Source of the DNA: Phaeosaccion multiseriatum
Taxonomy: Eukaryota > Protista > Ochrophyta, other classes
DNA: 64,000 nt
Direction: 5' to 3'
NCBI GenBank assembly: GCA_965112735.1
Contig: OZ218965.1
Location: 2,356,001 to 2,420,000 of the forward strand
Position 1 is the stretch's first letter, and every line of letters starts with the position of its first letter. Below the pieces are notes generated by a model, which saw only the letters and a program-made list of their open reading frames with translations, did not search any database and had not been told where the DNA came from. The position numbers were made by a program, and so were the translations under genes. Below are positions 32,035-55,548 of the stretch, piece after piece.

Positions 32035-32350
32035 AGTCTGCCTCTCCGCTGCTCGCTGCCGCGCCTCCTCTCACTCCTCGCCCACTGCCCTTTTTTTCTT
32101 CCTCTGCTGTGCGTGTGCACTGTGCAGGTACGTGTTGGTGGCTGCAGGGCGCATCGGTGGCGAGCTGATGCGGCTTGTGGCGGCGGCCATCTTCGAGGCG
32201 ATGAGGGCAGAGAAGATTGCGCCCAACTCCATCAGCCACCTACGGACTGTACACCAGCCAGAGCCCTCGGCGAGAACAACGCCAAACAACGCCTTCAATG
32301 CAGCGTCGTCAAGTGACAAGGCGGGCTACAGGGGAGGGGGGAGCAGTCCT

Positions 32351-32382
32351 GTACCAGTCTAGCAAAAGCACGACTTCTAACA
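32351..32382. mobile_element. Isolated arm of the 89-bp palindromic mini-element terminus
   Basis: gtaccagtctagcaaaagcacgacttctaaca, identical to 38260-38291. Confidence 0.85.
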
Positions 32383-32599
32383 GTCCGCACAGTGTCCCTG
32401 CGAGTCACGCGCACGCACACACCGGGCAGGCAGGGCCACGGGCAGGGTTCCGGCCAGGGCTACAGACAGGGCGTGTTCGAGGAGCTGGGACTGCAGTGGT
32501 GCGAGGCCGTGCTGGGCACCTCCTCCGCCGCCTCCGCCGTGGAGAGGGCGGGGGCCGCACGGAGGGGAAGTGCCATGACCCCAGCCAGCCTCAGCCGAG

Positions 32600-35219: not shown

Positions 35220-35416
35220 CAGTTTCGCCGAAATTTTTTGAGGCTGATTCAGACTGCGAGTTACTTCTCTTCACCATGCGGTTGGGGGGGGGGGGGGTTC
35301 GACTTGCTTATAGCAACGGTCTTGTTAGAAGTCGTACTTTTGCTAGACTGACCTCCCGGCCGGTCTGAATTCAGAGGGTAGAGGTATCCGTCTAGCAAAG
35401 AGTACGACTTCTAACA
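35220..35416. mobile_element. Diverged, inverted partial copy of the palindromic mini-element (part of the internal region plus one palindromic terminus, 35323-35416)
   Basis: agactgcgagttacttctc..G-run..ttcgac is the reverse complement of 38292-38360, followed by tgttagaagtcg...cgacttctaaca. Confidence 0.85.
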
Positions 35417-35435
35417 GCATCCGCCTGCGCTTCAT

Positions 35436-35828
35436 TGTTGAAAATCAGTATAATGTCAATGGCCCAGGCCCAGGCCCAGGCAAATACGGTGAGAAACGGT
35501 GCGTGGCCCGTTTCTCACTCACCTCCCAGCAGGTTGGTCGCTCGTTTAGGATGGCTCACGGATAAAGCTAATAGAGACAAGGCTGGCTGCCAGGCTGGCT
35601 TTGGGGTTGCTATTACCTTGTCCATGCGGCTACTCCTATCCTAGGTGGAGAGCAACGTGACTCTTTACAACCCCAAAGCCAGCCTAGCAGCCAGCCTTGC
35701 CTCTACTAACTTATCGCATGCTAGTCCTAAACGACCACCTACGCACATAGGATAGTGAGAGCCACGCCACCCGTTCTCACCGCATCTGCCTGGGCCTGGG
35801 CCATTGACTTACGAATCGACTTTCCACA
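35436..35828. mobile_element. 393-bp foldback/MITE-like element with TG..CA ends and 4-bp TSD TCAT
   Basis: Long imperfect inverted arms (gtcaatggcccaggccc../..gggcctgggccattgac; ggctggctttggggttg/caaccccaaagccagcc); tcat at 35432-35435 and 35829-35832. Confidence 0.8.
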
Positions 35829-36052
35829 TCATGTCGGAGTTTAGGCCAGCACACACAGCACAGCGATTTTAGTAGCCTAGTACTTGTAATTACAAAGGGA
35901 AGTCTAAATGCAACGTTTTGTCCCTACGACTCGTCAGTCCCCCCCATCGGAACAAAGTTCATATCAGCGATAACCCATGTGTCGCATGGACCTCTCATGC
36001 CGAAGCCTCTGGAGCGCCACTGCCAAACGCCTGCGTATAGCGCACATGGCTG

Positions 36053-36383
36053 TACACTTCGTCCGAGGCCTCAGGAATCGAGAACCACTTGAGAACCACT
36101 TCGTCCGAGGCCTCAGGACTCGAGAACCACTTGAGAACCACTTCGTCCGAGGCCTCAGGACTCGAGAACCAGTGGAGAACCACTTCGTCCGAGGCCTCAG
36201 GACTCGAGAACCACTTGAGAACCACTTCGTCCGAGGCCTCAGGACTCGAGAACCACTGGAGAATCACTTCGTCCGAGGCCTCAGGACTCGAGAACCACTT
36301 GAGAACCACTTCGTCCGAGGCCTCAGGACTCGAGAACCACTTGAAAACCACTTCGTCCGAGGCCTCAGGACTCGAGAACCAGT
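36053..36383 (+). repeat. 42-bp subtelomeric satellite, proximal block (about 8 units)
   Basis: Unit GAGAACCACTTCGTCCGAGGCCTCAGGACTCGAGAACCA(GTG/CTT/CTG). Confidence 0.95.
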
Positions 36384-36583
36384 TGTAAAAGCGACCTAAG
36401 CCGCTTAGACAAGTGGTAACCCTTGATATATTATACGGGATGGAACCCGTTTGCAAGCCCTGCTGCTAGGCTCTCCTTATACCAAGATCACCGTTCTGAC
36501 ATCCTCCTCCACTCAGAATCTACGTAATATAGGACACACCGACCATTGACTTATGGTCCTTCTCGCTCTGAGGCCTTCCAACA
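36384..36583 (-). repeat. 3' LTR of element A
   Basis: Direct repeat of 53439-53631 (2 substitutions, 1 indel); adjacent purine tract on the minus strand. Confidence 0.92.
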
Positions 36584-36659: not shown

Positions 36660-38202
36660 CTAGAACCCCAAATGTTGCGCCGTCTCCGCAGCGATGCCCA
36701 TCCCCCACTTCTCGTGCAACATGGCGCGCACGGTGCGCTCTCGTTTAGACCGCTGCCCACGCTTGCGCTGCACGCTCGGGTCCAACGCCCCTGGCGCCAA
36801 AGAGTCCTCGAATGCCTCTATTGCCGCCCTCTCCCCGCGCCGCAAGAGCCAATCGTCCCACTCCCACGTCTGATAACTGCCACCCTCCCGTACAGCCCAA
36901 CGGACACAGTACTCACGCCGTAGGGGCTGCCCTGTGGCCTTACGCCACCTCATCTTCACTATCCGCGCCAGGTTGGGCGCCCGCCCTATCCCAACCTCGT
37001 CATCGGTCACGCTACGCTTCTCCTGCAGTGCACTAGTACCCCAGTGGGCTGAGCAGTACCGGATGTGGTATCGAGCGAACCCATCTGGTAGTCCTTCCGG
37101 TTGGCCACTCACCCCATCAACGAACGGCTTGGTGAGGTCCCTATGGTACGCCCCTTGCTTGAACTCCACTCCCCCGCCTCTGACCCTCGGCACATCCAGA
37201 TACACCGTGCTACGGCGCATCACCGCGTAGTGCTCGTCGTTGAGTATGCCACCATGTCGCGCCTGGAAGGCCTGCTGTGTGGGCCAAGCCAGGACTTGGA
37301 ACGGTCCGTCCCAAGCATGACTCAGCGCCTTGAGCGTCAGTGCCTTCTGCTCCTCCATGGCCTCACCCTCCTCCTGCGCCGCCCCCCCTGGACGGTACAA
37401 CCACACCTTAGTGCCAGGAGGCATCGGCGCTGGCCAGCGACGCTCACGGTTCTTGAGCTGTAGCCTGCTGCGATACTCCTCGCGCCTGCCCGTCACCACC
37501 TGCGCCGCCGCTGCCATCCGCGCCCTCAGCTCGTGCACCCATGCCGAAGGCGTCTCGAACGAGCCGTCCTCCTCGAGGGCAGGCAGCATCGCTTGAAGTG
37601 GAATCGGGGGGTGTCGACCGAAGAGAGTGTAGTACGGGGAGAGGCCTGTGGTCTTGTGAGCTCTGCAGTTGTACGCGTACGTGAGCGCGGGAACATACTC
37701 AGGCCACTGCTGCATCTGGGCCTCCACTGTCGTCGCCAGCATGTCCTTCATCGTGGCCATGAAGCGCTCCACTTGCCCATTGGCTTGCTGATGCATCGGC
37801 GTAGTGAAGACTTGTGATGTCTGGAGTACGCGCAGCACATCGGCCATGAGCGTGCTCGTGAACTGCGACCCTTGGTCACTGACCAGCACCTTGGGCGCCC
37901 CCAGCACCGTCACTACGTGCCGCACGAATGCCCGAGCAATGCCCTCCGCTGTATAGTCCTTGGCGCACAATGGTACCACCACTGTCCATTTGGTGAACCA
38001 ATCTTGAAACACCAAAATGTACTCCTCCCCCCCCATGGCCATGGGGAAAGGTCCTGCCACGTCAGCACCCATAACCGCCCATGGCCCATTCACAGCCGCC
38101 GGTGATATGGACGAGAGCGGAACCTGTGGAGGCCGCCTCCGTGGTGTCTTGCGTGTCTGGCACGCAAGACATGAACGGGCCCAGTACAGCGCATGCCCGT
38201 TC
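36660..38202 (-). pseudogene. Element A integrase core, GPF motif and chromodomain (3' half of the split pol)
   Basis: GADVAGP, LVSDQGSQF, NGQVERF (DDE); WDGPF; IVKMR..EYCVRW..TWE. Continues the 51009-53438 frame when the insert is removed. Confidence 0.9.
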
Positions 38203-38515
38203 TGTTAGAAGTCGTGCTTTTGCTAGACTGGTACCTACCCTCTGAATTCAGACCGGGAGGTACCAGTCTAGCAAAAGCACGACTTCTAACAAGCCCTAAT
38301 GCTAGAAGTCGAACCCCCCCCCCCCCACCGCACATAGTGGAGAGAAGTAACTCGCAGTCTGGGAATCAGACTAATGGGTGCCAGCCGGTACCAGTTTTCG
38401 CCGAAAAACACACTTTTTTCACAAGCTACAGCCAGGATTCGAACTCGCAATGGCCTTGTTAGAAGTCGTGCTTTTGCTAGACTGGTACCTACCCTCTGAA
38501 TTCAGACCGGGAGGT
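38203..38515. mobile_element. Mini-element with palindromic terminal repeats: 89-bp palindrome (38203-38291), 165-bp spacer, second truncated copy (38457-38515)
   Basis: 34-bp perfect inverted arms tgttagaagtcgtgcttttgctagactggtacct around a tctgaattcaga centre; direct repeat of the unit at 38457. Confidence 0.88.
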
Positions 38516-38519
38516 TAGG

Positions 38520-38715
38520 TGTCGAAACTACCGACAGCTAGCCTCAAAGCCAAGCTAGAGCAGAGCAGGAGCTGAAGCAAGCACCCGGAAGCCAGCCCAC
38601 ACGCAGGCTGCGCTTCCTTCCTTTTATTACTGATTTACCGTCTAGTTGGCCCGTTTTCCGGCCGTTACACTACTGATTGGGTCCCCAAGGGACCCCAACT
38701 AGGCCACTTCTAACA
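38520..38715 (-). repeat. 3' LTR of element B
   Basis: Identical to 50813-51008. Confidence 0.96.
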
Positions 38716-38753
38716 TCCCCCTCACTACACCCCCGCCTCTTCCGCCAGCTCCC

Positions 38754-41700
38754 TCAGAAGCCGAGATGCGAGCGATAGAATTGCGTCTCGTGCGCCAGCC
38801 CGCTGCCCCACTTCTCATGTTGCCGCAGACGGATCGTGCTTTCCCGTTTAGACCTATGCCCTCTTTTGACATTCACTCCTGGATCAAGGGCAGTGTGCGG
38901 GAGGGCGTTCTCGAACGCCTCTATGGCCTTGGCGTGTCCCCGCTCCAGTAACCACTCAGCCCATTCCCAGGTCTGGAAAGTGCCGCCGTCCGACACCGCC
39001 CACCGCACGTTATACTCTCGCCGCAGTGGCAGCCCCGTGGCTTTGCGCCAGCGGAACTTCACAATCCTCGCCAGCGTGGGCACTTTCCCTTCACTCACCT
39101 CGTCCAGCTCTAAGCTACGCTGCTCCTGCATTGCGCTGGTAGCCCACTGAGGAGAGCACCAACGGATATGATACCTGGCGAACCCTTCCGGGAGACCGAA
39201 GGGCCGCTCGCTCACCCCATCGATGAACGGCTTCGTCAAGTCTCTGTGGTACGCCCGTTGCAGCTGCTCCACACCATTGCCGCGCACCCGTTTCATAGAC
39301 AGATACACTGCGCTGCGCTGCATGACCTGATAGTGCTCTTCACTCACCCGCCCATGCTGAGCACAGTAGGCCCCCAGAGCTGGCCAAGGCAAGACTGTAT
39401 AAGGACCATCCCACGAGTGCTGCAGAGCCTTGAGTTGCGCTGACGGGGGCCCTTCGAGTTCTTCCCCTTCTTGCTGGGCGGCGGCACCAGGACGATACAA
39501 CATCACCTTGGTTCCGGGTCGCAGGGGCGTCGGCCAACGGCGTGAGGCGTTCTTCAGCTGCAATCTCCCGTGGTAGTCGCAGCGCCTCCCATTGACCACC
39601 GCCGCAGCCGCAGCCAGACGTGCCCGCAGTTCGTGGACCCATGCCGAGGCAGACGAAAACGACCCGTCCTCCACTAGCGCCGGAAGCATCGCCTGTAGAG
39701 GCACCGGGGGGTGCCGACCGAACAAGGCGTAGAATGGCGCCATCCCCGTGCTCTCCTGCGAGCGGCAGTTGTACGCATAGGTGAGCCCGGCGACGTAATC
39801 TGGCCACTGCTGCATCTGTGACTCCACGGTCGTCGCCAACATGTCCTTGATCGTGGCCATGAAGCGCTCCACCTGCCCATTGGCCTGTTGGTGCATCGGC
39901 GTCGTGAACACTTGCGACGCCGATAGAACTCGCATCACATCGCCCATGAGCGCACTGGTGAACTGCGAGCCTTGATCACTCACCAGCACTCGGGGCACAC
40001 CCAGGGTGGTGACGACATGCCGCACGAAGGCCCGAGCAATACCTTCCGCCGTATAGTCCTGTGCCCTCAAAGGCACCACCACTGTCCACTTCGTGAACCA
40101 ATCCTGAAACACCAAGAGGTACTCCTCACCGCCCATGCCCATAGGAAAGGGGCCAGCCACATCAGCGCCCATGACCGCCCAAGGTCCATCCACCTTGGAA
40201 ATGGACGACAGCGGCACAGGCTTTGGCTGCCGGCGAGGAGTCTTGCGTGTCTGGCACGCCAGACAGGAGCGGGCCCAATACAGCGCATGTGCATTCATCT
40301 TCTCCCACCATACGCGCTCTTGCAGCGCGTCTAGCATACGTCCCGGGCCTTGGTGCCCACCTGCGATGGCATCGGTGTGGGCGGCATGCAGCAAGGCTGG
40401 CCGCATCTCCTTGGGCACACATACTTGTAGCCGAGTGTGCCGCACCCGCCACCGAAAGCCCCCAGGAGCCCACTTACGCATCAAGAGCCCGTCCTCATCC
40501 ACAAAGAACTCACCCCCACCTGCATCCACCACGCCGCCGGTGGGCCCAGCCTGAACACGGCGACGGAGTGCTTCCAGCTCCGCATCAGCCCGCTGCGCAC
40601 GCACCCACCACGCGGCCTCGACATGCAGACTGCCACCCAAAGCTCCAGCCGCTCGTCTGTGCGCCGCGGCAGCAGGCACCGTGCCTGGTAGAGACCACCC
40701 AAACTGTCGCTCTGCCTCTCGTCGATGCCCATCAAGCTCGCGCTGCAAGGTGGACTCCTGCTCCACCGGCTCCTTGGAAACTGAATCCACTGCCTCCTCA
40801 GCTTCATTATCCACTGCATCCGCAGCTTCATCACCTGCATCCCCCGCTTCTTCCGTGACCAGTAGATCTGCCGTACCAGGCTCCGACGGCGACTCCGCAG
40901 CAGGCGGCTCCCCAGGGTGGGTGATGCGGCCCTCCTCCGTAACAAGCTCCTCACCCTCGGTGGCACCAGCAACAGCAGCTGGACACACCTCCGAGGGCAG
41001 ACGAGACGCATCCTCCTCAAGCTCGGCCTCCCATGCAGCCCACGCATGAGCGGCCGCGGCACCCGTTTGCTGAGCCTCCGCTGGTGTGCACATCGAGAAG
41101 TAGTCACGCGACACCTGACGGACTTGCTTCCATGGCAACTCGATCATGGTATCTAGATGACTGGCCAACGCGCCCACCACCTTCCGCTGGCGCTTATATG
41201 TCCGCGTGAACCGCTCCACCATCTGCATCATTGTCTCCCACGAGCACTGCAGTTTGAATTGCAGTTTGGCCAGGTCGAATACCTCCAACGTCTTGGAGTG
41301 GACACCAAAGATGTAGAGCGGTGACACGTGGTCGCGATCGCCCCAATAACCAACCGCGGCCTGCATGAACCTGCCGACTTGCATCTCCTCCTGCTCCGCA
41401 GGGGTGTGAGCAGGGCTCATCGCGCTAAGCTCCACCCCCGGGCCACCATGGACGAACGGCACACACTCCGCCATGCGAGGCCAGAGGCGGAGGAGCGCCG
41501 CAGCGTCAGCAAACGCGTACTCCCGTTGAGCGGCGGACAGCGGCCGCTTCGTCCAATCGGTGGCCCGCTCCTCCTTGCTAAGGTGTTGCTCCAAAAACAT
41601 GCTGACAAGGTCCTGGAGTCCGATGAACTGAGTATGTTCGGGGCACACGCGCTTAAAGAGGTCACTGGTGTCCACCAAGTTGACGATGTGCTGGACATGC

Positions 41701-44700
41701 TCCGCGAGCTCCGGCCATCGGCCCAGGGCACGTTGGTCGTGACTCCAGTGGTGAGCCAGCTTCACAATCGAGGGTTCGGCCCACAGGTCCCGCAACACTT
41801 GCGCCAGTACCATCATACCCCCCGCCTTCTGAAGCGCGTCTAGATCAATCAAGAGCCCATAGTCACGCGCCACATCCGGCAGCGGCCCAACCTGCACGGC
41901 CAATTGCAGCAGCGACGCGCGCCGTCGGTGACGCGCCCACTCCGAATCCATAGCGACCACTTTGGCTGAGCGCAACTGAGTCGATAGAGCCTGCACGTGC
42001 CTCGGCGTAGACACGTACGTGCACCTCGCTGCGGAAATGTGACTCACAAATGGCGGCATCTGACCCGGCTGCCAGGCCTCTATCACAGCCTTCTTCACAC
42101 CCAGCTGAGGTGCTCGCGTAGGCTGCCATCCACATTGCTGAAGACGCTGTGTCCAAGCACGCCGAGCAGTACCCCTGCGTGACTGCGTCGCCGCCAAGTC
42201 CACCTCTGCAGTCTGCCAGGCTTGTAGGGCCTCCGCTCCGCTCTGCTGCTGGTGGTGGCACCGTTGCTGCTGTTGCTGGGCCGTCACGGCAGGCACAGGA
42301 ATAGGAAGGCGTGTGTCGGCTTCGCCCTGCAGCTGTTGCGCCACTGCGAGAAAGCGAAGCAGTGCGCCCTCCGTGGGCTCCTCCCAATGAAGGCTGCACT
42401 CGTCCCCTACCATCTCCACCAGGTTCAACTGCACCCCCATCGAAGCACACCAGGTGTGCAAGGGCGACGGCCACTCGCACGCAACCATGGCCAAGTCTAC
42501 CCCCGCATGCGTCTCCCACTCCTGCACCGGAAGCGCGTTGCGAGAGAGGCAGTCAGGCACCACCATTTGCTTCCCGGGACGATGCACAAACTGCAAGTGG
42601 TGCGTAGAGAGCCGCTCGTACCATCTGAACAGCTTGGAATTGGTATCCTTGTGCCCAGCCAACCACAACAAGGGCTGATGGTCCGTCACCACTGTGGTGG
42701 GGTAGTGGCAGATGTACATGGCCAGTTTGCGCACACACCACACCACTGCCAGCAGCTCCAGCTCCGTGCTGCTCAGTCGCGCCTCCGTCTCCGTGGTAGC
42801 CCGACTGATGAACGTCACCACACGCTCCTCCCCGGTCGCATCTTTCTGAGAGAGCACTCCTGCTAACCCTTCCGTCGAGGCATCGGTACTCAGGGTGAAA
42901 GTCGTCGCTGGCCCGTACTCCGGAAAAGCCAGTGCAGGGGAAGACAACAAGTCGGCAACGAGTCCATCCCAAGCTGCATCGTGCGAGGCATTCCAGGCGG
43001 TGCTCACGTCGACGCCCTTACGCAGCAGCCCATTGAGGGGCCGCACTTTGCGCGCAAACTCCGGAATGAAACGGCGAAAGTAGCTGAGCATGCCAATGAA
43101 ACGCCGCACCTGCTTAACTCGATTGACGCCGCCATCCTTCGCAAGCAACCTCAACGGCTTGACCAGCTCTTGCACCGCCGCATGCTTGGCCGGGTCTGTG
43201 CGCACCCCATTCTGATCCAGCAAATGCCCGCAGAACCGCACCTCCGGTGCACCCAATACAGCCTTACTCGGCTCCAACTTGAGCTTGTGCTCCACCAACC
43301 GCGCAAGCACAGCATCCAAATGCTCCAGATGCTGCTCAACCGTAGCCGAAAACACAGCAATATCGTCCACAAAGCATGCCACATGCTCCTGAAGCCCCTT
43401 GAGCACCTTGTTCATAAGCCGCACAAAGACTGCAGGCGCATTCTTCGCGCCCTGCGGCATCACTCGCCAAGCGTAAGTTCCACTGTGGCACACAAAGGTG
43501 GATATGTCCTCTTCCGCTGCTGATGCCATCGGCACATTGAAGTAGCCCGACATGATGTCCATCACCGAGAACACCTTGGAGCCATGCATCTCTGCCAGCA
43601 GATCATCAATCACCGGCATCGCAGGGGCCTCCGTGCGACACGCATCATTCAGCTGAGACAAGTCACACGTCATACGTACCACAGGCGTCCCATCCTCATG
43701 ACACTTGGTTTTGCCAGCTGCGTCCGTCTTCAAGACCGCCATCAGCGGAGTAGCCCAGCTGGAAGTGCTGGGGCGAATGATGGCAGCCGCGAGAAGCTTG
43801 TCAATCTCAATCTCAATCCCCCGCCGCAAATGTGGAGGATACCGTCGAGCGGAGCTCCGAATGGGCTGCTGATTCGCATCCTTCAGTCCCCACTCAAAGA
43901 AGAGAGTATCCGTCCGACCGTAGTCACCAGGCCTCTGACAGAATGCTTGCGACCGAGCGCGAAGGATCGCCACCAGTCCCCAGCGTTGCACCTCCGTCCA
44001 GGCACCGTCGCCAATCGTGATAGCGTGCAGGGGCGACGGTAGCTCCCTGAGCCAGAACTGAGCCCGCTCCGTAGTGAGCTTGGCACGGCGCCGCTGCTCC
44101 ACCACAAGCTCTCCTGCATCCCACGACTCCACTCCACCACCAAGACAGCGACTCTCCTGCAGCACCGTTCGCAATTGGATAAGGAGCAGCAGCGCATTGG
44201 TCATATCCTGCTCCACCTTCTCCTGCTGCTGTAATGGGCGACTAGACCACAACGACAAGAGCTGTTGGGCCCATGCGGCCACAGCAACGTCCCCAACGCC
44301 GCTCAGACCCGTGCCAGCGGCTTGGTGTACATGGGGGCGCAGGAGCAGTAGCGCGGTCACAGCCCCTTCCTCTGCCGCAACCAAGCACTCGCGCAGACGT
44401 CCATACACTCGCTCTGACAGGTGAGGGTACCACTCCTTGATCAACTGCACTCCTGCCATCAGAGTCCCACCGGACGTGTCACTCTGGCTACCGAGTCGCA
44501 AGGCACCATCCGCATCCAGTACCCACCCATCACCGCGTAGGTCAGTCAATGATGTGCCCACCGCCGCCGACGATGAACCTGCCTCGGACCGTAGTGGCGG
44601 TTCCTCCGACGCCACTGACGATGCCGCCCCTGGCGCAGGCCTGCTGGTGGAATCATCAGCCCCCGCCACGTGGTGGACCTGCAGCTGGCCTGTACGAGGC

Positions 44701-46700
44701 GGTCGGGGCTCCTGCAACTGTGTCTGACGGCGTCGCGCTACCGCCGCCGGAGCCACCTGCTGCTGTACCGCATTGGACCGCTGAACCTGCTGAGCTGCCG
44801 ACGAATCCGCTCGCTTAAAGAGCTCTTCCCGCTGGGCCTTGTGCCGTCGCTGCAATGCCCACTGGCGTTGCTGCCGTGCCTGCTGCTGTGCCGCTTGTAA
44901 CCGCTTGGCCTGCTGCGTTGCCAACCATGCTGCTGTCTCCTCCTTCGAGTCCACTCGTGGTGTGTCAGCTCGTCTGGCCGGCACTCGCACTATCCCCCCC
45001 CAGGAGGGCGCCAAGGGCACGCGACGCTCCCGCGGCACCTGTCGTTGCCCCAAGTCGCTCCCCCAAGCGAGACGAAGCCCTCGGTGATGCCAGGCGCAGG
45101 AGCCGTCAGCGCACAGCTCCCGTCGCAGCGGCAAAACTTGTCGTCGCACTTGCTCATGGCGCTCCAACACTGCTTGCCGATGAACCTGGTCCCACAGCAC
45201 AGGAGACTCCACAAGCATTGATGCCACTCTCCGACGTTGCCGCTGCAACCGCCCAGCACCCACTCGACTCTGACGACACTGACTCCCCTTCTTGCCGCTG
45301 CGCTGCAAATGCTGAAACCGGGCCTTCACTGCCGGCTGAGGCACCAGAGTCGATGGCACCCCCACCTCAGTCCGTGGGTGCGTCAGGGCCTGCACCTGCA
45401 CAGCTTGCAGCGGAAGCGCCGTAGCCCCCAGCTCAGCCTCCTCTGGTACCACCGAGCAGCGAACTACAGGCCCCTGCGGTGGGCACCAGACCGGCTCAGC
45501 TCCTGCTTCAGCTTCAGCCGGCTGCTGCGACGCCTCCTCCTCCACCACAGACTCAACCGCCTCCCGCGCCTTGGACCATGGCAGCCTGCGCTTCACCACA
45601 CGCCTCACCATCCCGCCAAGAGCACCAAGCCAGGAGGAAGGGGCCGCTGCAGTCTCCGGCATGGTATCTGAAGAAGCCGGCTCAGCGAGCATGAGCGCGG
45701 CCACCTCAGCGCTCGCCTCCGAGTCGAGCAAGCAAGAAGCGGTGCCGATGACCTGCCCAGGAACGACCACAATGACCTGATTGTGGTGATTCTGCACTGT
45801 GATTCGGTAACTCTGCCCCCCAGCATACACACCATCTTTGTGCGCCACTAGAACCTGCTCGTGCTCCAGCCACCATAGAACGTCCGCCTCTGCCGCCAAG
45901 TGTCCGTGAGCGCCCAGCTCCACCACCGCCTGGACACCCTCAACGATACCCGTAAGCTCGAGGAGAAGGGACCCCGTCTGTCCAGGTCCCAAGCTCAAAG
46001 CCTCCACCGCACGTACCCCCCCAACAGCAGCGTTGCCGTCCACCACTGCCAGCACTTGCACAGCCAAGGCATCGGACGGACGAGCATCCGACGTGGCCTC
46101 CTCCGAAGGAGTCGGAAGTACGTAGAGCTGCTTCGCACGATGATCGACGACTGCCCCTACTTGGGTGAAGAAATCCTGCCCCAAGAAGATGGGCCGCGCC
46201 AAGTGGTCCACCACATGAAAGGGTAGCACCGGCTGGCACGTCGGCGTGAGTCCCACCTGAAGCCAAACAAGCCCTCTGGACATGGTCTTGGCACGATTGT
46301 CAGCGTAAGACACCTGCACCCCCTTCTGCGTGGCGAGCTCTGACCGCTCCACCGTGCCATCCGCCACCAGTTGATTGAAGCAGGCTGTCGAGATGCAGCC
46401 CGCTCCTGTGCACCCACTGTCCATCAAGGCTGTAAAGGCGCTCTTCTCCACGGCGTCGGCGGCACTGGCATCCCGTGGAGCGGTAGCAGCCAAGCAATGC
46501 CGAGCGTCACTGACCTTCACTGGCGAGCGCACCGTAACCTCGATCGTGTGGCCCCGCCCTGCTGGGACTGCCGTACGACCCGTGGCAGCCACCGCTTCGG
46601 CAATCTCAGCTCTCCGCACTGCTGTCTGCAAGGCGGCCACCCCCCCGGAGCGTCCTCCATCCGCACACGGTAGAGAGCCAAGGCAGCGCGTTGCACACAC
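38754..46700 (-). CDS. pol: Pol polyprotein: aspartic protease, dUTPase-like segment, long spacer, RT, RNase H, DEDDy 3'-5' exonuclease, unknown domain, integrase, chromodomain
   Basis: LMDSGC; MDIMSGYFNV, MPQGAKNAP, FVDD; STDAS, ELELLA, TDHQPL, PDCLSR; AMDSEW..HDQRAL..YAFAD; H-H-C-C, D-D-E, GPY; EYNVRW..TWE. Confidence 0.95.
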   Translation of the reverse strand: MCATRCLGSLPCADGGRSGGVAALQTAVRRAEIAEAVAATGRTAVPAGRGHTIEVTVRSPVKVSDARHCLAATAPRDASAADAVEKSAFTALMDSGCTGAGCISTACFNQLVADGTVERSELATQKGVQVSYADNRAKTMSRGLVWLQVGLTPTCQPVLPFHVVDHLARPIFLGQDFFTQVGAVVDHRAKQLYVLPTPSEEATSDARPSDALAVQVLAVVDGNAAVGGVRAVEALSLGPGQTGSLLLELTGIVEGVQAVVELGAHGHLAAEADVLWWLEHEQVLVAHKDGVYAGGQSYRITVQNHHNQVIVVVPGQVIGTASCLLDSEASAEVAALMLAEPASSDTMPETAAAPSSWLGALGGMVRRVVKRRLPWSKAREAVESVVEEEASQQPAEAEAGAEPVWCPPQGPVVRCSVVPEEAELGATALPLQAVQVQALTHPRTEVGVPSTLVPQPAVKARFQHLQRSGKKGSQCRQSRVGAGRLQRQRRRVASMLVESPVLWDQVHRQAVLERHEQVRRQVLPLRRELCADGSCAWHHRGLRLAWGSDLGQRQVPRERRVPLAPSWGGIVRVPARRADTPRVDSKEETAAWLATQQAKRLQAAQQQARQQRQWALQRRHKAQREELFKRADSSAAQQVQRSNAVQQQVAPAAVARRRQTQLQEPRPPRTGQLQVHHVAGADDSTSRPAPGAASSVASEEPPLRSEAGSSSAAVGTSLTDLRGDGWVLDADGALRLGSQSDTSGGTLMAGVQLIKEWYPHLSERVYGRLRECLVAAEEGAVTALLLLRPHVHQAAGTGLSGVGDVAVAAWAQQLLSLWSSRPLQQQEKVEQDMTNALLLLIQLRTVLQESRCLGGGVESWDAGELVVEQRRRAKLTTERAQFWLRELPSPLHAITIGDGAWTEVQRWGLVAILRARSQAFCQRPGDYGRTDTLFFEWGLKDANQQPIRSSARRYPPHLRRGIEIEIDKLLAAAIIRPSTSSWATPLMAVLKTDAAGKTKCHEDGTPVVRMTCDLSQLNDACRTEAPAMPVIDDLLAEMHGSKVFSVMDIMSGYFNVPMASAAEEDISTFVCHSGTYAWRVMPQGAKNAPAVFVRLMNKVLKGLQEHVACFVDDIAVFSATVEQHLEHLDAVLARLVEHKLKLEPSKAVLGAPEVRFCGHLLDQNGVRTDPAKHAAVQELVKPLRLLAKDGGVNRVKQVRRFIGMLSYFRRFIPEFARKVRPLNGLLRKGVDVSTAWNASHDAAWDGLVADLLSSPALAFPEYGPATTFTLSTDASTEGLAGVLSQKDATGEERVVTFISRATTETEARLSSTELELLAVVWCVRKLAMYICHYPTTVVTDHQPLLWLAGHKDTNSKLFRWYERLSTHHLQFVHRPGKQMVVPDCLSRNALPVQEWETHAGVDLAMVACEWPSPLHTWCASMGVQLNLVEMVGDECSLHWEEPTEGALLRFLAVAQQLQGEADTRLPIPVPAVTAQQQQQRCHHQQQSGAEALQAWQTAEVDLAATQSRRGTARRAWTQRLQQCGWQPTRAPQLGVKKAVIEAWQPGQMPPFVSHISAARCTYVSTPRHVQALSTQLRSAKVVAMDSEWARHRRRASLLQLAVQVGPLPDVARDYGLLIDLDALQKAGGMMVLAQVLRDLWAEPSIVKLAHHWSHDQRALGRWPELAEHVQHIVNLVDTSDLFKRVCPEHTQFIGLQDLVSMFLEQHLSKEERATDWTKRPLSAAQREYAFADAAALLRLWPRMAECVPFVHGGPGVELSAMSPAHTPAEQEEMQVGRFMQAAVGYWGDRDHVSPLYIFGVHSKTLEVFDLAKLQFKLQCSWETMMQMVERFTRTYKRQRKVVGALASHLDTMIELPWKQVRQVSRDYFSMCTPAEAQQTGAAAAHAWAAWEAELEEDASRLPSEVCPAAVAGATEGEELVTEEGRITHPGEPPAAESPSEPGTADLLVTEEAGDAGDEAADAVDNEAEEAVDSVSKEPVEQESTLQRELDGHRREAERQFGWSLPGTVPAAAAHRRAAGALGGSLHVEAAWWVRAQRADAELEALRRRVQAGPTGGVVDAGGGEFFVDEDGLLMRKWAPGGFRWRVRHTRLQVCVPKEMRPALLHAAHTDAIAGGHQGPGRMLDALQERVWWEKMNAHALYWARSCLACQTRKTPRRQPKPVPLSSISKVDGPWAVMGADVAGPFPMGMGGEEYLLVFQDWFTKWTVVVPLRAQDYTAEGIARAFVRHVVTTLGVPRVLVSDQGSQFTSALMGDVMRVLSASQVFTTPMHQQANGQVERFMATIKDMLATTVESQMQQWPDYVAGLTYAYNCRSQESTGMAPFYALFGRHPPVPLQAMLPALVEDGSFSSASAWVHELRARLAAAAAVVNGRRCDYHGRLQLKNASRRWPTPLRPGTKVMLYRPGAAAQQEGEELEGPPSAQLKALQHSWDGPYTVLPWPALGAYCAQHGRVSEEHYQVMQRSAVYLSMKRVRGNGVEQLQRAYHRDLTKPFIDGVSERPFGLPEGFARYHIRWCSPQWATSAMQEQRSLELDEVSEGKVPTLARIVKFRWRKATGLPLRREYNVRWAVSDGGTFQTWEWAEWLLERGHAKAIEAFENALPHTALDPGVNVKRGHRSKRESTIRLRQHEKWGSGLAHETQFYRSHLGF

Positions 46701-47774
46701 CCCTCACACATATCACACTCACTGTCAACAGCCGACGCACAGGCACAAGCTCCCGGACTGGGGGGCTCCTTGAGCAGAGCGACTCCCGCGCCAGGCTCCA
46801 AGGCTACTGCATGACAAGCACGCACAAACGGATCAAGGGCAAGCGTGTGCAGCCCCGCCTCCTCCGTCAACACCGCCGTGAAAGCAGCCTCCTGCTGATG
46901 CTGCTGTGCTGCTGCTGTCGCACGAGCACGCTGCCTCCGCTGCTTCCTCCGTACCCGCCGTCGAAGAGCTACTGCGCGCCTCGCTGCATCCTGCTGCTCC
47001 TGTGCCGCCTGCTCGTCACCCTTGCGCAGCGCTGCCTTCGCCTGCTGGGCACGCCGTCTCAACCACTTTGCTGCCACCCTCTGCTCAGTCCTGCTCCGCC
47101 CCTCCGCCGGAGGCACCGCTGGAGACGTCAGCGGCAGGGTCCGAAGGCTCTGCTCCTGCTGCTGAAGCTGAACCTCCTCCTGCTGCTGAAGCTGAACCTG
47201 CCACGCCCACTGTTCATGTTCCCCCGTGGGAGTGAATGGCGGAAGAGATGCTGCCCCGAGCGGTAAGGCCCGCACGAGGCCCATGGCCTTGGCCTGGCGA
47301 GGCGTCACCAGGGAGCACAGCTGCTGAGGCTGAAGCTCATCGCTTGACGGTGGGCTGGCTTTTGCAACCTGGACGGCAGCCTCGACAGCATGACCCTGCT
47401 GCTGCTCCAATTGCTCCTGCTGCCCCCCCGCCACCTGCGGCTGCTGCTGCAGCAGCTGCTGCTGCTGTCCCAGCCGCTGTTGCCGCTCCTTCGCCGCACG
47501 CAGTGCGCGCTGTTCCGGGAAGGCACACGCACGCACCCGCTCCAAACCCCTTGCATCCATCCAGACAGACTCGTGTTGCGCAACGGTTGCCGCCTCGCAC
47601 TCAACCTCCCCCACTGCCGACGGTGGCACCTGCTGCTCCGGACACTCACCCGCAACGACTGCATCCTCCTGGCGCAGAGGCAGCGGCAGCGCGACGTCAG
47701 GTCCGCTCGACGGCTCGACGGCAGAGCCGGGCTGCGGTGCTTCGACTAAGCACACGGAGCGTACCACTGGACAC

Positions 47775-47807
<33 letters not shown>

Positions 47808-48448
47808 GGCGGCGGCAGCTGCTCGACTGCGGAAGCCGCTGGCGCAGCCTCCTGGTGCGCGCCCTCCACGACTACCTCTACTGCACGCTGCGCCTGCTGC
47901 TGTACCGCCGTCATCGTCGTGTGCTCACCAGCAACGACTGCATCCGGGCCGTCAGTGCCCCGCGACTGCTCGACCACAGAGCGTACCACAGGACCCGGCT
48001 GCTGGCGCTGCGGCTGCGGCAGCTGCCGCTCCGACGCTGGCAGCTGCTCGACCGCGGACGGCGCAGGCACAGCCTCTCTGTGCGCACCCTCCACGACTGC
48101 CTCTACGACACGGCGCTGCTGCTGCTGCTGCTGCTGCTGCAGCTGCTGCTGCTGTTGCTGTTGCCGTTGTAGCCGAGCACGTTTGAGTCTGTCGCCACAC
48201 CACATGTCACTCCGATAAACTCTGATGGCAGGTGACTCCTGCTCTACACGACTAGCCTGACCGCTCCTACGCTGAGCGTCGGCATGGGGCAAAGGTGGGT
48301 CTGACAAACAAGATAGGTGCGAAGTACATTCATTATCTTCTACACTGCTCTTGCCCGCCCTCCCCCCCTGTTCCCCCACGCCGACGCTATCCTCACGCGC
48401 GGCGGTCGTGGTCCCCAGGGCTGCTGGCCAAGCAGCCCCGGGGCACCG
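46517..48448 (-). CDS. Q/E-rich intermediate ORF of element B, in frame with gag behind a single UGA
   Basis: No stop between 48448 and 46517; repeated AVEAVVEGAH.EA.PA.SAVEQLP modules. Confidence 0.6.
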
Positions 48449-48749
48449 TCAGCCTTCGAACTTGAACCCGTCCTGCGCCGCCAGAGTGCCCGCCACCATT
48501 GCTGCTACGGCTTCAGACATGTCGGACTCCTGGTGCTGCGCTCTGACCGCCTGCCGCCGCTGCACGCGACTCACAATGCCGAGCAGCTCCTCACGCGTAG
48601 CGGGGATGGCGTTGCATTCTATCCATCCATGGCCGGCGCGGCGACAAGTCATGCAGTTAAATGGGGCATTGCCGTTGCCACGCTGCTTCACCGAGCCGTG
48701 GAACAGCAAGGGCCGCTGCTGGGTGGGCGTGAGCCGCGGCTGCTGCGCC

Positions 48750-48784
<35 letters not shown>

Positions 48785-50670
48785 TGCATTCACCCCCACC
48801 TCCTGTGACGGCTGATGGTCCAGATGCTGCTCCACCGAATTCACGGCCACTTCCAGATGCTGCTCCACCGCATTCACGGCCACTCCCCCGCGCGGAGTGC
48901 GCAGACCACCACCACCACCACCACGGGCCCGCGTAGCCCCACCAGTAGAAGAGAGCGTAAGTGGGCTACCAGCCTGGAGCACCCGAGTCGCGGAAGGAAA
49001 TGCCTTCTGGAAGGCGGCGTAGAAATCACTCCACGAGGGAGTCGCCGACTCCCAGCGCAGCCAGAAGTTGGTCATGCCGTCAGTTAATGGCAACGAGCCG
49101 TGACGAAGCCGAATCTCGACCTCTGGCCGCAGCACCGCCAGCAGGCCCGTAACCAAGGCTTGCTCATCCGTGGCCTGCCCCGTCACCTGCGCCAGACACA
49201 GAGAGAGTTCCGCCAGCTTGGTGAGCAGCCTGGCGAGCGCCTGGTTCACCTCGGCAGGAACGGTGGACGCTTCCAGAGGCTTGGCCTCCCGCACCAACGT
49301 CTGGACAAGCTGCTGGAGGCCGTCTCGCGCAACAGGAACGCCGAAGAGACGCAACAGACACCTCGCGAGCAATTGGAACTGTGCACTCTCCGTCTCCCAC
49401 TCCAATGTGACGTGCTGGTCGCCCTCCATCCACGACGCACCCTTCTGAGCCTCCGCCAGGACAGTGGCCCGATCCACTGCACCCAAGTCGGCCAGCACTC
49501 GCTGCTCCATCACCCGCCCTTGGCCCGGAAGCACGGACCCAGTAGAAGTCAAGATCTCCTGTCCTTGCAGAATGCTCACCCAGTTGTACATGCGTGCGAG
49601 CACCACAGCACGAGGATGAGGCTGTCCAGCCGCATCGAATAGAGAGGGAAGTTTCTGCTCCTGGAGCACACGGATAGCACCCACGGGCAGCGTGATCGTC
49701 TGCACCGTATGACGGGCGGGCGCCTGCAGCACATCCAGGGCCTGCTGCCGTGCCCGCTCCCGCTCCCGTTCCATGTCCCGCTGTAGCATATCCTTAACCT
49801 GCTGCTGCAGCACCTCTACCCCCCCGGTGCGGCATCCTTAACCTGCTGGAGCTGCGCCGCTAACAGCTCCCGCTGCAACGTCTCCACCTCCAACTGGGCA
49901 GCACCCTCAGGCGGCCGCTTCGGCGGCGGCTGCGCCGCCATCTGTCGCTGCAGCTCCGCCGCCACCTGCTGCTGCAGCTCCACCGCAAACTTCCGCTGCT
50001 GCTCCGCCCCCCGCGAGAGCCGCAGCACCTCCAGTTCCCGCTGGAGGGCCGCCGTCTCCGCCTTGCTCTCCCGCAGTTGGGCCGCCATGAGCTGCGCAGC
50101 TTGGTGCTGCGTCAGCATCTCAAGCCCCTCCTGGAGAACCCGCGTGTCCTCCTGCTCCGGTGTCTTCTCTCCCTCCGCTGGCTGATCCACCACCCGAGCC
50201 CCGCCAGACGCACCAACAAGAGGGACCAAGGGCGTGCCAACCACATCCCACACCGTGCTCTCCTCCTGGCCCACCGACTCTGCATCCCCCGAGTCCTCCT
50301 GGCCCACCGACTCTGCATCCCCCGAGTGGAAGGAAACCTCCGACGCCGCCACCGTCAGCGGCCTCACCCCAGCAGCAGGAGGGGAAGCGGCAGCAGCCGT
50401 AATCGCAGACCCCTCAAAAAAAGAGGGCGACTCCAGGGACTCCTCCCCCCGACGCAACGCCGCCCGCACACGGTCCACAGCCCCAGGGCTGGCAGTGACC
50501 TCCGCAGGAGGAGCAGCAGCTTCCGATACCACAGACCCCACGTCCGCAGCACCACCATCAGCTCCACCGCCCTCAGCGTCACTCGTAGCGCCCTCCGCCG
50601 ATGAAAGACTCAGGAAGTCCCCCTCCTCAGCCCTGGCCACCCTAGCAGCGTGGAACCGCAGGAAGTCCAT
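48449..50670 (-). CDS. gag: Gag of element B, two segments separated by a frame break at the G7 run (49819-49825)
   Basis: ATG 50670; coiled-coil N-terminal part; zinc knuckle CMTCRRAGHGWIEC (CX2CX4HX4C). Confidence 0.8.
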
Positions 50671-50803
50671 CCCCGCCTCAGCCAGTGCCACCCTAGCAAG
50701 CCCAAAGCTGTCTACGGCCTAAAGCTGGGCAGCTGGAAGCAAAGCTCAAGCCAACACAATAAATCAGCCTCAAAGCTGGATCTCAGACCTGTGTCTTTCG
50801 GGT

Positions 50804-50812
50804 CTTCCGGGT
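50804..50812 (-). promoter_or_regulatory. Putative self-priming primer-binding site (ACCCGGAAG)
   Basis: Immediately follows the 5' LTR; complementary to LTR 50876-50884; lacks the TGG of a tRNA PBS. Confidence 0.7.
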
Positions 50813-51008
50813 TGTCGAAACTACCGACAGCTAGCCTCAAAGCCAAGCTAGAGCAGAGCAGGAGCTGAAGCAAGCACCCGGAAGCCAGCCCACACGCAGG
50901 CTGCGCTTCCTTCCTTTTATTACTGATTTACCGTCTAGTTGGCCCGTTTTCCGGCCGTTACACTACTGATTGGGTCCCCAAGGGACCCCAACTAGGCCAC
51001 TTCTAACA
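50813..51008 (-). repeat. 5' LTR of element B
   Basis: Identical to 38520-38715; TAATAAAA at 50915-50922. Confidence 0.96.
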
Positions 51009-53438
51009 GTTCATGGAGGGCCACCACACTCGCTCCTGCAGCGCATCCAGCATCCGCCCTGGCCCGTGATGGCCGCCTGAGACCGCATCGCCGTGCGTGG
51101 CATGCAGCAGGGCCGGCCTGAGCGCCTTGGGGACGCAGAGCTGCAACCTCGTTCGCTCTACCCGCCACCGTCGCCCCCCGGGGGCCCACTTGCGGCGAAG
51201 GACGCCATCGCCATCGAGAGAGAACTCCCCCCCGCCCGCATCGAACACCCCCTCGCCTGGGGAGGCTGCCAAGACCTTCTGACGCCACCCCTCCAACTCA
51301 GCGTCCTGCTGCTGCGCCTTCACCCACCACGCGGGCTGGTAAGTCCGAGCCCCATGCAATATGCGGGCTGCGCACGACTGCTCACCCACTGCCGGGGGAA
51401 CACCAGGGAGGGACCACCCAAATTGCCGCGTAGCAGCCTGCCTTGCGGCCTCCACGTCTGCCAGCGCTGCTGCCTCGCTCGCCGCAGCCGCATGGGCATC
51501 GGTGTCAGCCGCTAGAGTCGCTCCAGCCTCTCGTCCCTCCACCCCCGTGGCCGAGCCGCCAACTGTGAGTCCGCCGCCTCCTCCTCCTCCTCCTCCTCCG
51601 CCTCCTCCTCCTCCTCCTCCTCCTCCTCCTCCTCCTCCTCCTCCTCCTCCTCCTCCTCCTCCTCCTCCACCTCCGCCGCCGCCGCTGCCGCCGCCTTCAA
51701 CCCCTCCTCCGCCGCCTGCACCACCCGCACCGTCACCGCCGCCGGCTGTGGCGTCTGCTGGGGCCGCAGGCGGTGTGCGCTCCGCCTCCACCGTCGATGC
51801 ACCCACCACGCCCGCGGCCTCGACGGCGGCAGGGATGTCCCACGCCACACCTTGGGTTTGCCACTGCTGCTGGGCCTCTGTGGGGGTCACCATGGTGTAG
51901 TAGCCGCCCGTATCTGCGGCGATGGCACTCCACGTCTTCTCAATCATAACCGCTCGAGGTAGTGACAGCTTGCCACGCCTCCGCGCCGCGGCCGGCCGAT
52001 AGCGCGCCCTGAACTGCTCCACTGCGTCCATGAGCTCCGTCCAGGTCCACTGGGGATGTCGGTAAGAAAGAAGGATCAGGTCGATCATCTCCACTGACTT
52101 AGCGGTCGCTGAGAAAATGAAGAGCGGACTGGCGTGCTCCCGATCGGCCCAATACCCCACCCCGGCAGAGACGAACTGTCCTGCGCGCATCTCAGCACGC
52201 GTCACACCCGCCCCCCCGCTATCCACCGCGCTCACTTCCATCGCAGACGGCACCGGAACTGCACAAGCCCGCATCTTCGGCAACAACTGTAGTAATGCGG
52301 CCACATCGTCGAAGGCATAGCTGAGCTGGGCCGCAGTGAGCTCCCGCTGAGTCCAATCCGTCTTCTGCTCCTCCTTGCTCATAAAACGCTGCAGGAACAT
52401 ACTAACCAGGTCTGCTAAGCCAATGGGACGGCAGTGCTCAGGCCACACCTCCTTGAATAAATGCGTCGTGTCGACCAAGTTGGCGATGGTCCACACATGC
52501 GGCGCCAACGCCGGCCACTTCCCTAGGGCACGCTGGTCGTGACTCCAGTGATGCGCCAGCTTCATAATCCCCCCGTCGCCCCACAGCTCACTCAGCACCG
52601 CCGCCAGCGCCTCCATACCACCATTGCCACTCAAACTGTCCAAATCCACCCAGAACCCACAATCACGCTCCGAATTGGCGACGCCGCTATACTGAACACC
52701 CAACTGCAGCAGAGACGCCGGCCGAGGAGGAGTGCGTATAGCCCACTCCGAGTCCATGGCCACCACTGTCGCCTCCCGCAGTGCCGCTCGCATGTCCCAC
52801 ACCTGCTCCTCCGTGCGTATGTACGTGCACCGCGCTGCTGGCACGTGGCTGAGAAACAGCGGCAGCTGAGACCACTCCTCTATCACCCGTTTCTTCTCGT
52901 TGATGTGGGACAGGGTCACTGGAGCCCAGCCACATTGCCGCATCTGCTCCACGTGCTGCAGCCGAGCCGACCCGAAGCCGCCTGGCGCCTCGACCGCCAC
53001 ACTGTCCACGCACAGCGCCTCCAAACCTGCCGACGCCTGCTGTCTCGCCGTGACCGACGAGAGCCCCTCCATAGGCACTGACTGAGCCGCCACCGCCTCC
53101 CCTTGCAACTGCTGCGCCGCGGCAGCAAACCGCAGCACCGCACCTTCCACCGGATCCTCCCACCCTAACGCGAGGGTGTCACCCACCACATCCACCAACG
53201 CCACCTCCACTCCCACCGCATCACACCACTCAGTCACAGGCAAGGGGTCGCGTGACAAGCAGTCAGGCACCACAAGCTCCCGCCCCGGTTTGTGGACAAA
53301 CTTGAGATGATGAGCAGAGAGCCGTTCATACCACCGAAAGAGCTTGGAGTTGGTGTCCTTGTGTGTCGCCAGCCACAGCAATGGTTGGTGGTCCGTCACC
53401 ACCGTGCAGGGATGGTGGCAAATGTACATGCTCAACTT
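51009..53438 (-). pseudogene. Element A pol fragment: RNase H C-terminal half, DEDDy exonuclease, unknown domain, poly-Gly linker, integrase zinc-finger N-half
   Basis: TDHQPLLWL..PDCLSR; AMDSEW..HHWSHDQRAL..YAFDD; HATH..GGHHGPGRMLDALQERVWWPSMN. Confidence 0.9.
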
Positions 53439-53631
53439 GCGACCTAAGCCGCTTAGACAAGTGGTAACCCTTGATATATTATACGGGATGGAACCCGTTT
53501 GCAAGCCCTGCTGCTAGGCTCTCCTTATACCAAGATCACCGTTCTGACGTCCTCCTCCACTCAGAATCTACGTAATATAGGACACACCGACCATTGACTT
53601 ATGGTCCTTCTCGCTCCGAGGCCTTCCAACA
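53439..53631 (-). repeat. 5' LTR of element A (7 bp of the U5 end missing, fused to RNase H)
   Basis: Direct repeat of 36391-36583. Confidence 0.9.
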
Positions 53632-55548
53632 CAGTGGAGAACCACTTCGTCCGAGGCCTCAGGACTCGAGAACCACTTGAGAACCACTTCGTCCGAGGCC
53701 TCAGGACTCGAGAAACCACTGGAGAATCACTTCGTCCGAGGCCTCAGGACTCGAGAACCAGTGGAGAACCACTTCGTCCGAGGCCTCAGGACTCGAGAAC
53801 CACTTGAGAACCACCTCGTCCGAGGCCTCAGGACTCGAGAACCAGTGGAGAACCACTTCGTCCGAGGCCTCAGGACTCGAGAACCACTTGAGAATCACTT
53901 CGTCCGCGGCCTCAGGACTCGAGAACCAGTGAAGAACCACTTCGTCCGAGGCCTCAGGACTCGAGAACCAGTGGAGAACCACTTCGTCCGAGGCCTCAGG
54001 ACTCGAGAACCAGTGGAGAACCACTTCGTCCGAGGCCTCAGGACTCGAGAACCACTGGAGAACCACTTCGTCCGAGGCCTCAGGACTCGAGAACCAGTGG
54101 AGAACCACTTCGTCCGAGGCCTCAGGACTCGAGAACCACTGGAGAATCACTTCGTCCGAGGCCTCAGGACTCGAGAAACAGTGGAGAACCACTTCGTCCG
54201 AGGCCTCAGGACTCGAGAACCAGTGGAGAACCACTTCGTCCGCGGTCTCAGGACTCGAGAACCACTTGAGAATCACTTCGTCCGCGGCCTCAGGACTCGA
54301 GAACCAGTGAAGAACCACTTCGTCCGAGGCCTCAGGACTCGAGAACCAGTGGAGAACCACTTCGTCCGAGGCCTCAGGACTCGAGAACCAGTGGAGAACC
54401 ACTTCGTCCGAGGCCTCAGGACTCGAGAACCACTGGAGAACCACTTCGTCCGAGGCCTCAGGACTCGAGAACCAGTGGAGAACCACTTCGTCCGAGGCCT
54501 CAGGACTCGAGAACCACTGGAGAATCACTTCGTCCGCGGCCTCAGGACTCGAGAACCACTTGAGAACCACTTCGTCCGAGGCCTCAGGACTCGAGAACCA
54601 GTGGAGAACCACTTCGGCCGCGGCCTCAGGACTCGAGAACCACTTGAGAACCACTTCGTCCGAGGCCTCAGGACTCGAGAACCACTGAGGCCTCAGGACT
54701 CGAGAACCAGTGGAGAACCACTTCGTCCGCGGCCTCAGGACTCGAGAACCAGTGGAGAACCACTTCGTCCGATGCCTCAGGACTCGGGAACCAGTGGAGA
54801 ACCACTTCGTCCGAGGCCTCAGGACTCGAGAACCAGTTGAGAACCACTTCGTCCGAGGCCTCAGGACTCGAGAACCACTTGAGAACCACTTCGTCCGCGG
54901 CCTCAGGACTCGAGAACCACTTGAGAACCACTTCGTCCGCGGCCTCAGAACTCGAGAACCACTTGAGAACCACTTCGTCCGAGGCCTCAGGACTCGAGAA
55001 CCACTTGAGAACCACTTCGTCCGAGGCCTCAGGACTCGAGAACCACTTAAGAACCACTTCGTCCGAGGCCTCAGGACTCGAGAACCAGTGGAGAACCACT
55101 TCGTCCGCGGCCTCAGGACTCGAGAACCACTTGAGAACCACTTCGTCCGAGGCCTCAGGACTCGAGAACCACTTGAGAACCACTTCGTCCGAGGCCTCAG
55201 GACTCGAGAAACAGTGGAGAACCACTTCGTCCGAGGCCTCAGGACTCGAGAACCACTTGAGAACCACTTCGTCCGAGGCCTCAGGACTCGAGAACCAGTG
55301 GAGAACCACTTCGTCCGAGGCATCAGGACTCGAGAACCAGTGGAGAACCACTTCGTCCGAGGCCTCAGCACTCGAGAACCAGTGGAGAACCACTTCGTCC
55401 GAGGCCTCAGGACTCGAGAACCAGTGGAGAACCACTTCGTCCGAGGCCTCAGGACTCGAGAACCAGTGGAGAACCACTTCGTCCGATGCTTCAGGACTCG
55501 AGAACCAGTGGAGAACCACTTCGTCCGCGGCCTCAGGACTCGAGAACC
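53632..55548 (+). repeat. 42-bp subtelomeric satellite, distal block (about 45 units), directly joined to the telomere
   Basis: Same unit as 36053-36383; junction ..gagaacc|ttaggg. Confidence 0.97.

Follow-up and report, generated by a model that had tools for sequence, protein, structure and literature searches.

A mobile, non-coding family with hairpin terminal repeats, co-integrated with a gypsy-type element in Phaeosaccion multiseriatum

The usual hallmarks of non-autonomous LTR elements are direct repeats, a PBS and a PPT. Functionally, the closest known class to the family described here is that of the TRIMs, which include tandem TDRx_I(x-1) arrays (PMC6934838). Self-priming in reverse transcription is cited in the same paper for Tf1/Tf2-type elements (PMC6934838). 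Among transposons with integrase-type chemistry, Ginger1 has TIRs of 40-270 bp and targets CCGG/CCGT, and Ginger2 targets RTATAY (PMC2836005). Full-text literature searches returned no description of a palindromic-LTR or hairpin-LTR mini-element. Two more distant systems make use of DNA that folds back on itself: retroviral minus-strand strong-stop DNA can snap back, and parvoviruses such as AAV possess terminal hairpins with an asymmetric centre that occurs in two orientations, and form rolling-hairpin dimers.

The family is like TRIMs in being non-coding and shorter than 1 kb, in making short target duplications, and in having terminal direct repeats of ~90 bp with TG..CA ends around an internal domain of ~165 bp. 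Repeat-sharing arrays, a rare solo repeat and an apparent dependence on an autonomous LTR element are further likenesses, and its duplications have the same length (4 bp) as those of the presumed autonomous partner, element B. Unlike in TRIMs, each terminal repeat is a near-perfect hairpin, no tRNA-type PBS was found, and inverted dimers predominate at the loci examined. Moreover, the family resembles its presumed partner only in the 10-nt U3 tip, which is present at both ends.

The window analysed was a stretch of 64,000 nt (contig OZ218965.1, positions 2,356,001 to 2,420,000, forward strand). Numbering of the hairpin repeat P and the body b follows the sense strand of element B, here the minus strand. 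The features are as follows, in window coordinates:

32346-32386, plus strand: micro-insert of 33 bp (32350-32382) in a 4-bp duplication, GTCC
35241-35416, plus strand: older truncated copy of the family, comprising part of b and a 94-bp P, 86-87% identical
38199-38202, no strand: target duplication GTTC, left copy
38203-38291, minus strand: hairpin repeat P, complete, 89 bp; the integrated DNA terminates with its outer end, TGTTAGAAGT
38292-38456, minus strand: internal body b, 165 bp, non-coding
38457-38515, minus strand: partial P, positions 31-89 in b-sense numbering, stopping at the boundary of stem and bubble
38516-38519, no strand: filler of 4 nt (minus strand: CCTA) that separates the partial P from the LTR end of B
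38520-38715, minus strand: 3' LTR of the gypsy-type element B, 196 bp, TGTTAGAAGTGG...TTTCGACA, 100% identical to 50813-51008
38716-50812, minus strand: internal part of B, with gag-like ORFs and a pol of 2648 aa
50813-51008, minus strand: 5' LTR of B, its U3 start adjoining the right target duplication
51009-51012, no strand: target duplication GTTC, right copy

Inspection of 38203-38291 bore out the 89-bp unit that the sequence-only reading had described, with perfect inverted arms of 34 bp (37 nt at 97%) and a palindromic core of 12 nt (TCTGAATTCAGA) at its centre. The bubble is asymmetric, one flank being 1 nt longer than the other. As single-stranded DNA, P was calculated to fold at -44.8 kcal/mol (z = -16.5). 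A second copy begins 254 bp later in direct orientation, leaving the 165-bp gap that is b, as had been noted; but this copy is limited to 59 nt, which as a single strand fold with the 3' end paired. The sequence-only reading had taken 38203-38515 for a free-standing element with the first 10 nt of B's U3 at both tips. This had to be revised: the identity holds for the outer end of P, whereas 38515 is no element end, and the integrated unit is 38203-51008. The tip sequence, TGTTAGAAGT, constitutes the first 10 nt of B's LTR (the U3 start) and occurs 8 times in the window versus 0.06 expected. Beyond this 10-nt tip, sequence comparison found no similarity of P and b to B or to a second element, A. 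On the minus strand, a T-loop-like box, GTTCGAATCC, lies close to the 5' end of b, and a run of 13 G is situated 22 nt ahead of the next P; copies of b with 100% identity occur in at least 15 other places in the genome.

Related pieces reported elsewhere in the window were located at 32350-32382 and 35241-35416. The former, the micro-insert, consists of T plus P58-89, i.e. one hairpin stem; it starts at P58, whose pairing partner in the hairpin is P32. A different foldback of 393 bp with TG..CA ends has been noted at 35432-35832, 16 bp from the older mini-element copy.

From 38203 to 51008 the order is P, the 165-bp b, partial P, filler and B, and the sole 4-bp duplication is GTTC. The insertion splits the integrase gene of element A, the two halves of which flank the composite: 51006 is the last position of the zinc domain, and the core domain is taken up again at 38093. 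The empty site was found in Logan contigs of public runs (X1, X3 and X5, from two studies), which join 38202 straight to 51013 onward; the P59/LTR junction was unbridged in the public-run contigs shown. The single GTTC duplication and the uninterrupted site in these contigs demonstrate that P, b, P[31-89], the filler and B were inserted together in a single DNA molecule. Both outer tips of the composite are TGTTAGAAGT, one being the P end and the other the U3 start of B. Three other derivations were ruled out. Elsewhere in the genome, ~35 matches to the LTR terminate exactly at 38520, so P-b-P is not part of B's normal LTR. Landing of B in a pre-existing mini-element is excluded by the lack of any P remainder past 51008, and the 4 bases beside the LTR differ from P27-30. 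Derivation by internal deletion from B or A was rejected because the likeness is confined to the 10-nt tip.

B is a Ty3/gypsy-type element of 12.5 kb on the minus strand. Its 2648-aa pol contains RT, RNase H, 3'-5' exonuclease and integrase zinc and core domains, and its own 4-bp duplications (TGAT, CACA, CATT and CGCC) are as varied as those of the mini-element. A tRNA-type PBS is absent from B as well. The exonuclease domain (DNA_pol_A_exo1, Pfam E = 1e-20) lies between RNase H and integrase at window positions 41480-42010, within the minus-strand ORF 38754-46700; element A also carries DNA_pol_A_exo1 (Pfam E = 2e-15). The 9 nt directly after the 5' LTR of B (ACCCGGAAG; window 50795-50812, minus strand) are complementary to CTTCCGGGT inside the LTR, at LTR positions ~125-133 and ~30 nt downstream of the AATAAAAGG box, a layout resembling self-priming in Tf1. 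P32-40 of the mini-element (CCTCCCGGT) matches the CTTCCGGGT motif at 7 of 9 positions. The U3 of element A starts with TGTTGGAAGG, and a 42-bp satellite at 35897-36490 and 53570-55548 was recognised as part of A's LTR. Because the window ends in ~8.4 kb of TTAGGG telomere repeats (55549-64000), the composite is placed ~4.5 kb from the chromosome end, and its mini-element part ~17 kb.

A search of the genome (67 Mb, 22 contigs) agreed with the earlier suggestion of a dispersed non-coding family. The 254-bp b+P unit gave at least 250 matches, at least 15 of them at 100% identity, and the core pattern TTTTGCTAG...CTAGCAAAA identified 147 palindromes versus 0 in the control. The palindromes fall into subfamilies P1, P1b, P2 and P2b, in which arm differences are paired and the asymmetric-centre design is retained. 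In the second family, P2, the ends are TGTAAGAA(A/G)G and the body is 173 bp, with the landmarks of b: a GTTCGAWTC box ~10 nt past the 5' repeat, motifs reading TTTTCGG, and a G-run after which the end of the repeat recurs in degenerate form. A partner LTR with an end matching that of P2 was not found; a purine run followed by TGTAAGAARG gave 16 hits versus 10 in the control, and the idea that each hairpin family mirrors a partner of its own is unsupported for P2.

When target duplications were tabulated, exact 4-bp duplications were found at 10 of the 14 arrays in which both outer repeats are intact (CGTA, ACAG, ATCT, CTTC, CGTG, GGAG, GTTT, AACG, GTCA and CCAT), versus 0.05 expected by chance. 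Four others are flanked by CGCG, CGCT, GCCA and CATG, a solo P by AACA and the 33-bp insert by GTCC, so that at least 16 insertions with varied 4-bp duplications belong to the family. The termini are TGTTAG...CTAACA, of the TG..CA type. The family is thus mobile and non-coding, its ends are identical to the U3 tip of B, and it has been co-integrated with B.

The commonest form among the loci fetched is an inverted dimer of 597 bp, P-b'-P-b-P, and dimers far outnumber monomers there. Young dimers are perfect palindromes save for the asymmetric bubble. As read from this bubble, the orientation of the outer P relative to b is fixed in all 28 cases, and only the central P of dimers occurs in both orientations. 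The terminal repeats are therefore direct and the layout is TRIM-like, as the sequence-only reading had it; the repeats are likewise direct in tandem P-b-P-b-P arrays and in a P2 monomer. Nine junctions were head-to-head, one was tail-to-tail and five were tandem. In one dimer (L029, C10:2319268-2319886) the arms are ~90% and ~99% identical to the young family and ~10% apart; this dimer is a heterodimer of subfamilies, and it implies recombination or template switching between different copies.

Because the tips copy the U3 end of B, it was inferred with good support that a gypsy-type integrase, most likely that of B, would insert linear mini-element DNA and generate the 4-bp target duplications. 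The enzyme had been proposed to be a chromovirus integrase. The TG..CA ends, the 4-bp duplications and the fusions with B-type LTRs within shared duplications fit a gypsy-type integrase, and they withstand the refutation set out in the sequence-only reading; a chromodomain, however, was not found in B (Pfam, last 500 aa, E up to 1), where only rve and rve_3 were detected. Taking the evidence together, we consider it fairly probable that P-b-P is a non-coding, non-autonomous, TRIM-like LTR mini-element that a gypsy-type integrase inserts and that would be copied by a snap-back mechanism.

The main competitor, already named in the sequence-only reading, is a foldback DNA transposon, a Ginger-like MITE. 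Here the 597-bp dimer with its 254-bp inverted arms would be the unit, moved by an integrase-related DDE transposase encoded elsewhere, and in the composites the enzyme would use the P end and the distal TGTTAGAAGT end of the adjacent B. A transposase recognising the same 10-nt ends could indeed move both elements and composites. The termini fit TGTNR, the duplications are 4 bp, the arm length is within the range of Ginger1 TIRs (PMC2836005), dimers are far more frequent than monomers, and neither a PBS nor an adjacent PPT was found. However, the targets are varied and are not CCGG/CCGT or RTATAY, which weakens the proposal, and the repeats are direct rather than inverted in 28 of 28 cases. 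Among ~80 loci examined there was no P-bounded element longer than ~2.3 kb, and a transposase partner for the family was not found. The ends match the LTR of a retroelement with roughly 20 young copies in the genome, and the family is fused to cDNA-type ends of that retroelement, unlike Ginger1 and Ginger2. Nor would cut-and-paste transposition be expected to yield discrete internal ends at P31/32 (described below) or chimeras that differ in polarity. A Ginger-like origin is accordingly regarded as unlikely.

Two additional fusions with B-type LTRs were observed, indicating that physical joining of mini-element DNA to the cDNA-type ends of B is recurrent. On contig 10, a P-b-P-b-P array adjoins the U3 start of a full B (...CTAACA/TGTTAG..., the stroke marking the junction), the whole being bracketed by TCCT. 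On contig 5, close to its end, P46-89 is fused to the U3 start of a B-like LTR. Furthermore, seven independent chimeric junctions begin abruptly at P30-32, where the perfect stem gives way to the bubble. The sequence upstream of the break at each is:

this window: LTR end of B plus CCTA
C14:2726312: truncated body of the P2 family
C4:4081240: b' cut at position 27
C6:2381437: complete P end
C14:2357452: foreign C-run sequence
C9:447304: unrelated flank, with P30-89 alone
C14:1558570: TGTTA joined to P32-89, 64 bp in all, with the duplication CATG

Genome-wide patterns gave a foreign base before A31 at 6 sites (one of them an arm mutation) versus 2 at neighbouring positions, and one extra base at positions 31/32 at 6 sites versus 1 at neighbouring positions. 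Register variants at P31/32 comprise a single extra base or a duplication of 5 nt. Breaks also cluster at a second site, the tip of the hairpin (P44-48), where they are frequently accompanied by AT-rich filler.

These breaks suggest, with moderate support, that a linear species ending at P31/32 exists during the copying of the TRIM-like mini-element. Its simplest source might be first-strand cDNA stopped at the 5' end of a b-sense RNA that would start at approximately P31/32. The 3' end of this cDNA would pair across the centre of the hairpin, and three fates can be envisaged. It may snap back and copy itself, so that the second arm and then b and P are regenerated, giving a head-to-head dimer P-b'-P-b-P with one central P. 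Alternatively, another growing strand may enter the cDNA end to produce chimeras, or the cDNA may be joined to that of B, as in the composite of the window, which would have been integrated via its two outer TGTTAGAAGT ends. Under snap-back extension the arms would remain perfect, whereas a bubble copied from the template would retain its asymmetry; the register variants at P31/32 would fit imprecise priming.

Extending this scheme, we tentatively propose, with the balance somewhat against it, that the hairpin repeat, besides being an integrase site, has a role in replication: RNA would be made from the stem/bubble boundary, strong-stop cDNA would prime itself, and half of each central repeat would be rebuilt per cycle. 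If true, this would be a polar, rolling-hairpin-like reverse transcription needing no tRNA primer, and it would explain why the arms are perfect, why the asymmetric bubble is conserved and why head-to-head dimers and chimeras at P31/32 occur. Like self-priming of the Tf1 or retroviral type, it would involve a nascent or template end that folds on a nearby complement and acts as a primer, and B itself has the 9-nt complementarity between LTR and post-LTR sequence seen in Tf1. Unlike in those systems, the fold-back of the mini-element would be productive, rebuilding half of a terminal repeat. The likeness to parvoviruses and AAV is one of geometry only, namely terminal palindromes with an asymmetric centre and dimers that share a single central palindrome. 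In contrast to them, the family has no Rep/HUH nickase, its outer repeats never flip, its junction bias corresponds to one polar step and not to symmetric rolling, and its ends are integrase sites.

Several observations speak against the snap-back model or reach beyond it. Regeneration of the complete outer P is unaccounted for in it, as are the first-strand primer and the role of the G-runs. The latter (G13 in family 1, G9 in family 2) lie 22-24 nt upstream of P and are not adjacent to it, as a polypurine tract should be. A tRNA-type primer site beside P was not found with ARAGORN and Rfam, and the conserved GTTCGAWTC box has the sense orientation of a tRNA rather than the antisense one. The dimer whose arms are ~10% different cannot arise by snap-back alone, and recombination between subfamilies would be needed. 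End-joining of extrachromosomal DNAs would account for the fusions equally as well as template jumping. Origin of P and b from a tRNA or SINE was considered and rejected, ARAGORN giving no hit and Rfam only generic, sub-threshold miRNA-hairpin hits. An A-box/B-box resemblance was noted but not adopted either, since the spacing and an early T5 run would yield a small RNA only.

Another interpretation is that there is no replicator at all, P and b being by-products of the reverse transcription of B, or captured hairpin DNA inserted sporadically by integrase. Such events might explain the duplications around very short inserts (33 bp and 64 bp) and the fusions with B's cDNA ends. Nevertheless, b and P have only 10 nt in common with B, and there are hundreds of near-identical copies of constant architecture and a second homologous family of the same design, which indicate a self-perpetuating lineage; we regard the by-product interpretation as improbable. 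A host palindromic satellite that spread through segmental duplication or fold-back rearrangement, or alternatively an artefact of assembly, could account for three copies centred in larger flank palindromes, for inverted duplicates in some regions of contig C14 and for the subtelomeric clustering, but is scarcely credible, given that the elements are dispersed over many contigs, that their 4-bp duplications differ and that independent runs contain the empty site.

If the TRIM-like reading holds, such a parasite may need little beyond 10 nt of its partner's U3 tip, placed on a hairpin. The inserts of 33 bp and 64 bp suggest a smaller requirement still, perhaps only TGT...ACA ends. The family would also be of use as a natural archive, in the genome, of abortive and chimeric products, all of which point to one discontinuity and so open the question of copying to direct tests.

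In addition, the hairpins seem to remodel the ends of chromosomes. Copies of the family are clustered in subtelomeres, and in two places telomere repeats, (TTAGGG)n, begin directly on a truncated b: at L003:2426-2546 (C13:3328000-3328120) and at L074:4230-4260 (C5, ~4375040). The repeats follow the G13 run in one copy and TTTTTGGG in the other. It appears that broken mini-elements at chromosome ends were healed by telomere addition. A P-b-P, a dimer and a solo P, one each, were found at the exact centre of larger palindromes, at L021:1350-1820 (C7:3934100-3934570), L040:2196-2906 (C14:2648280-2648990) and L073:1820-1990 (C8). Their flanks are reverse-complementary over 18 to at least 60 nt, without a direct duplication, which suggests that the hairpins trigger fold-back inverted duplication of host DNA. 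Finally, insertions at the exact tip of a central P were observed at L008:2043-2123 together with L007:1304-1374 (C12:3039992-3041387) and at L003:1786-2026 (C13:3327374-3327592). One is a 1.4-kb piece with inverted ends of ~50 bp and the other is 220 bp long, and the centre of the hairpin thus seems to be a hot spot for insertion or repair.
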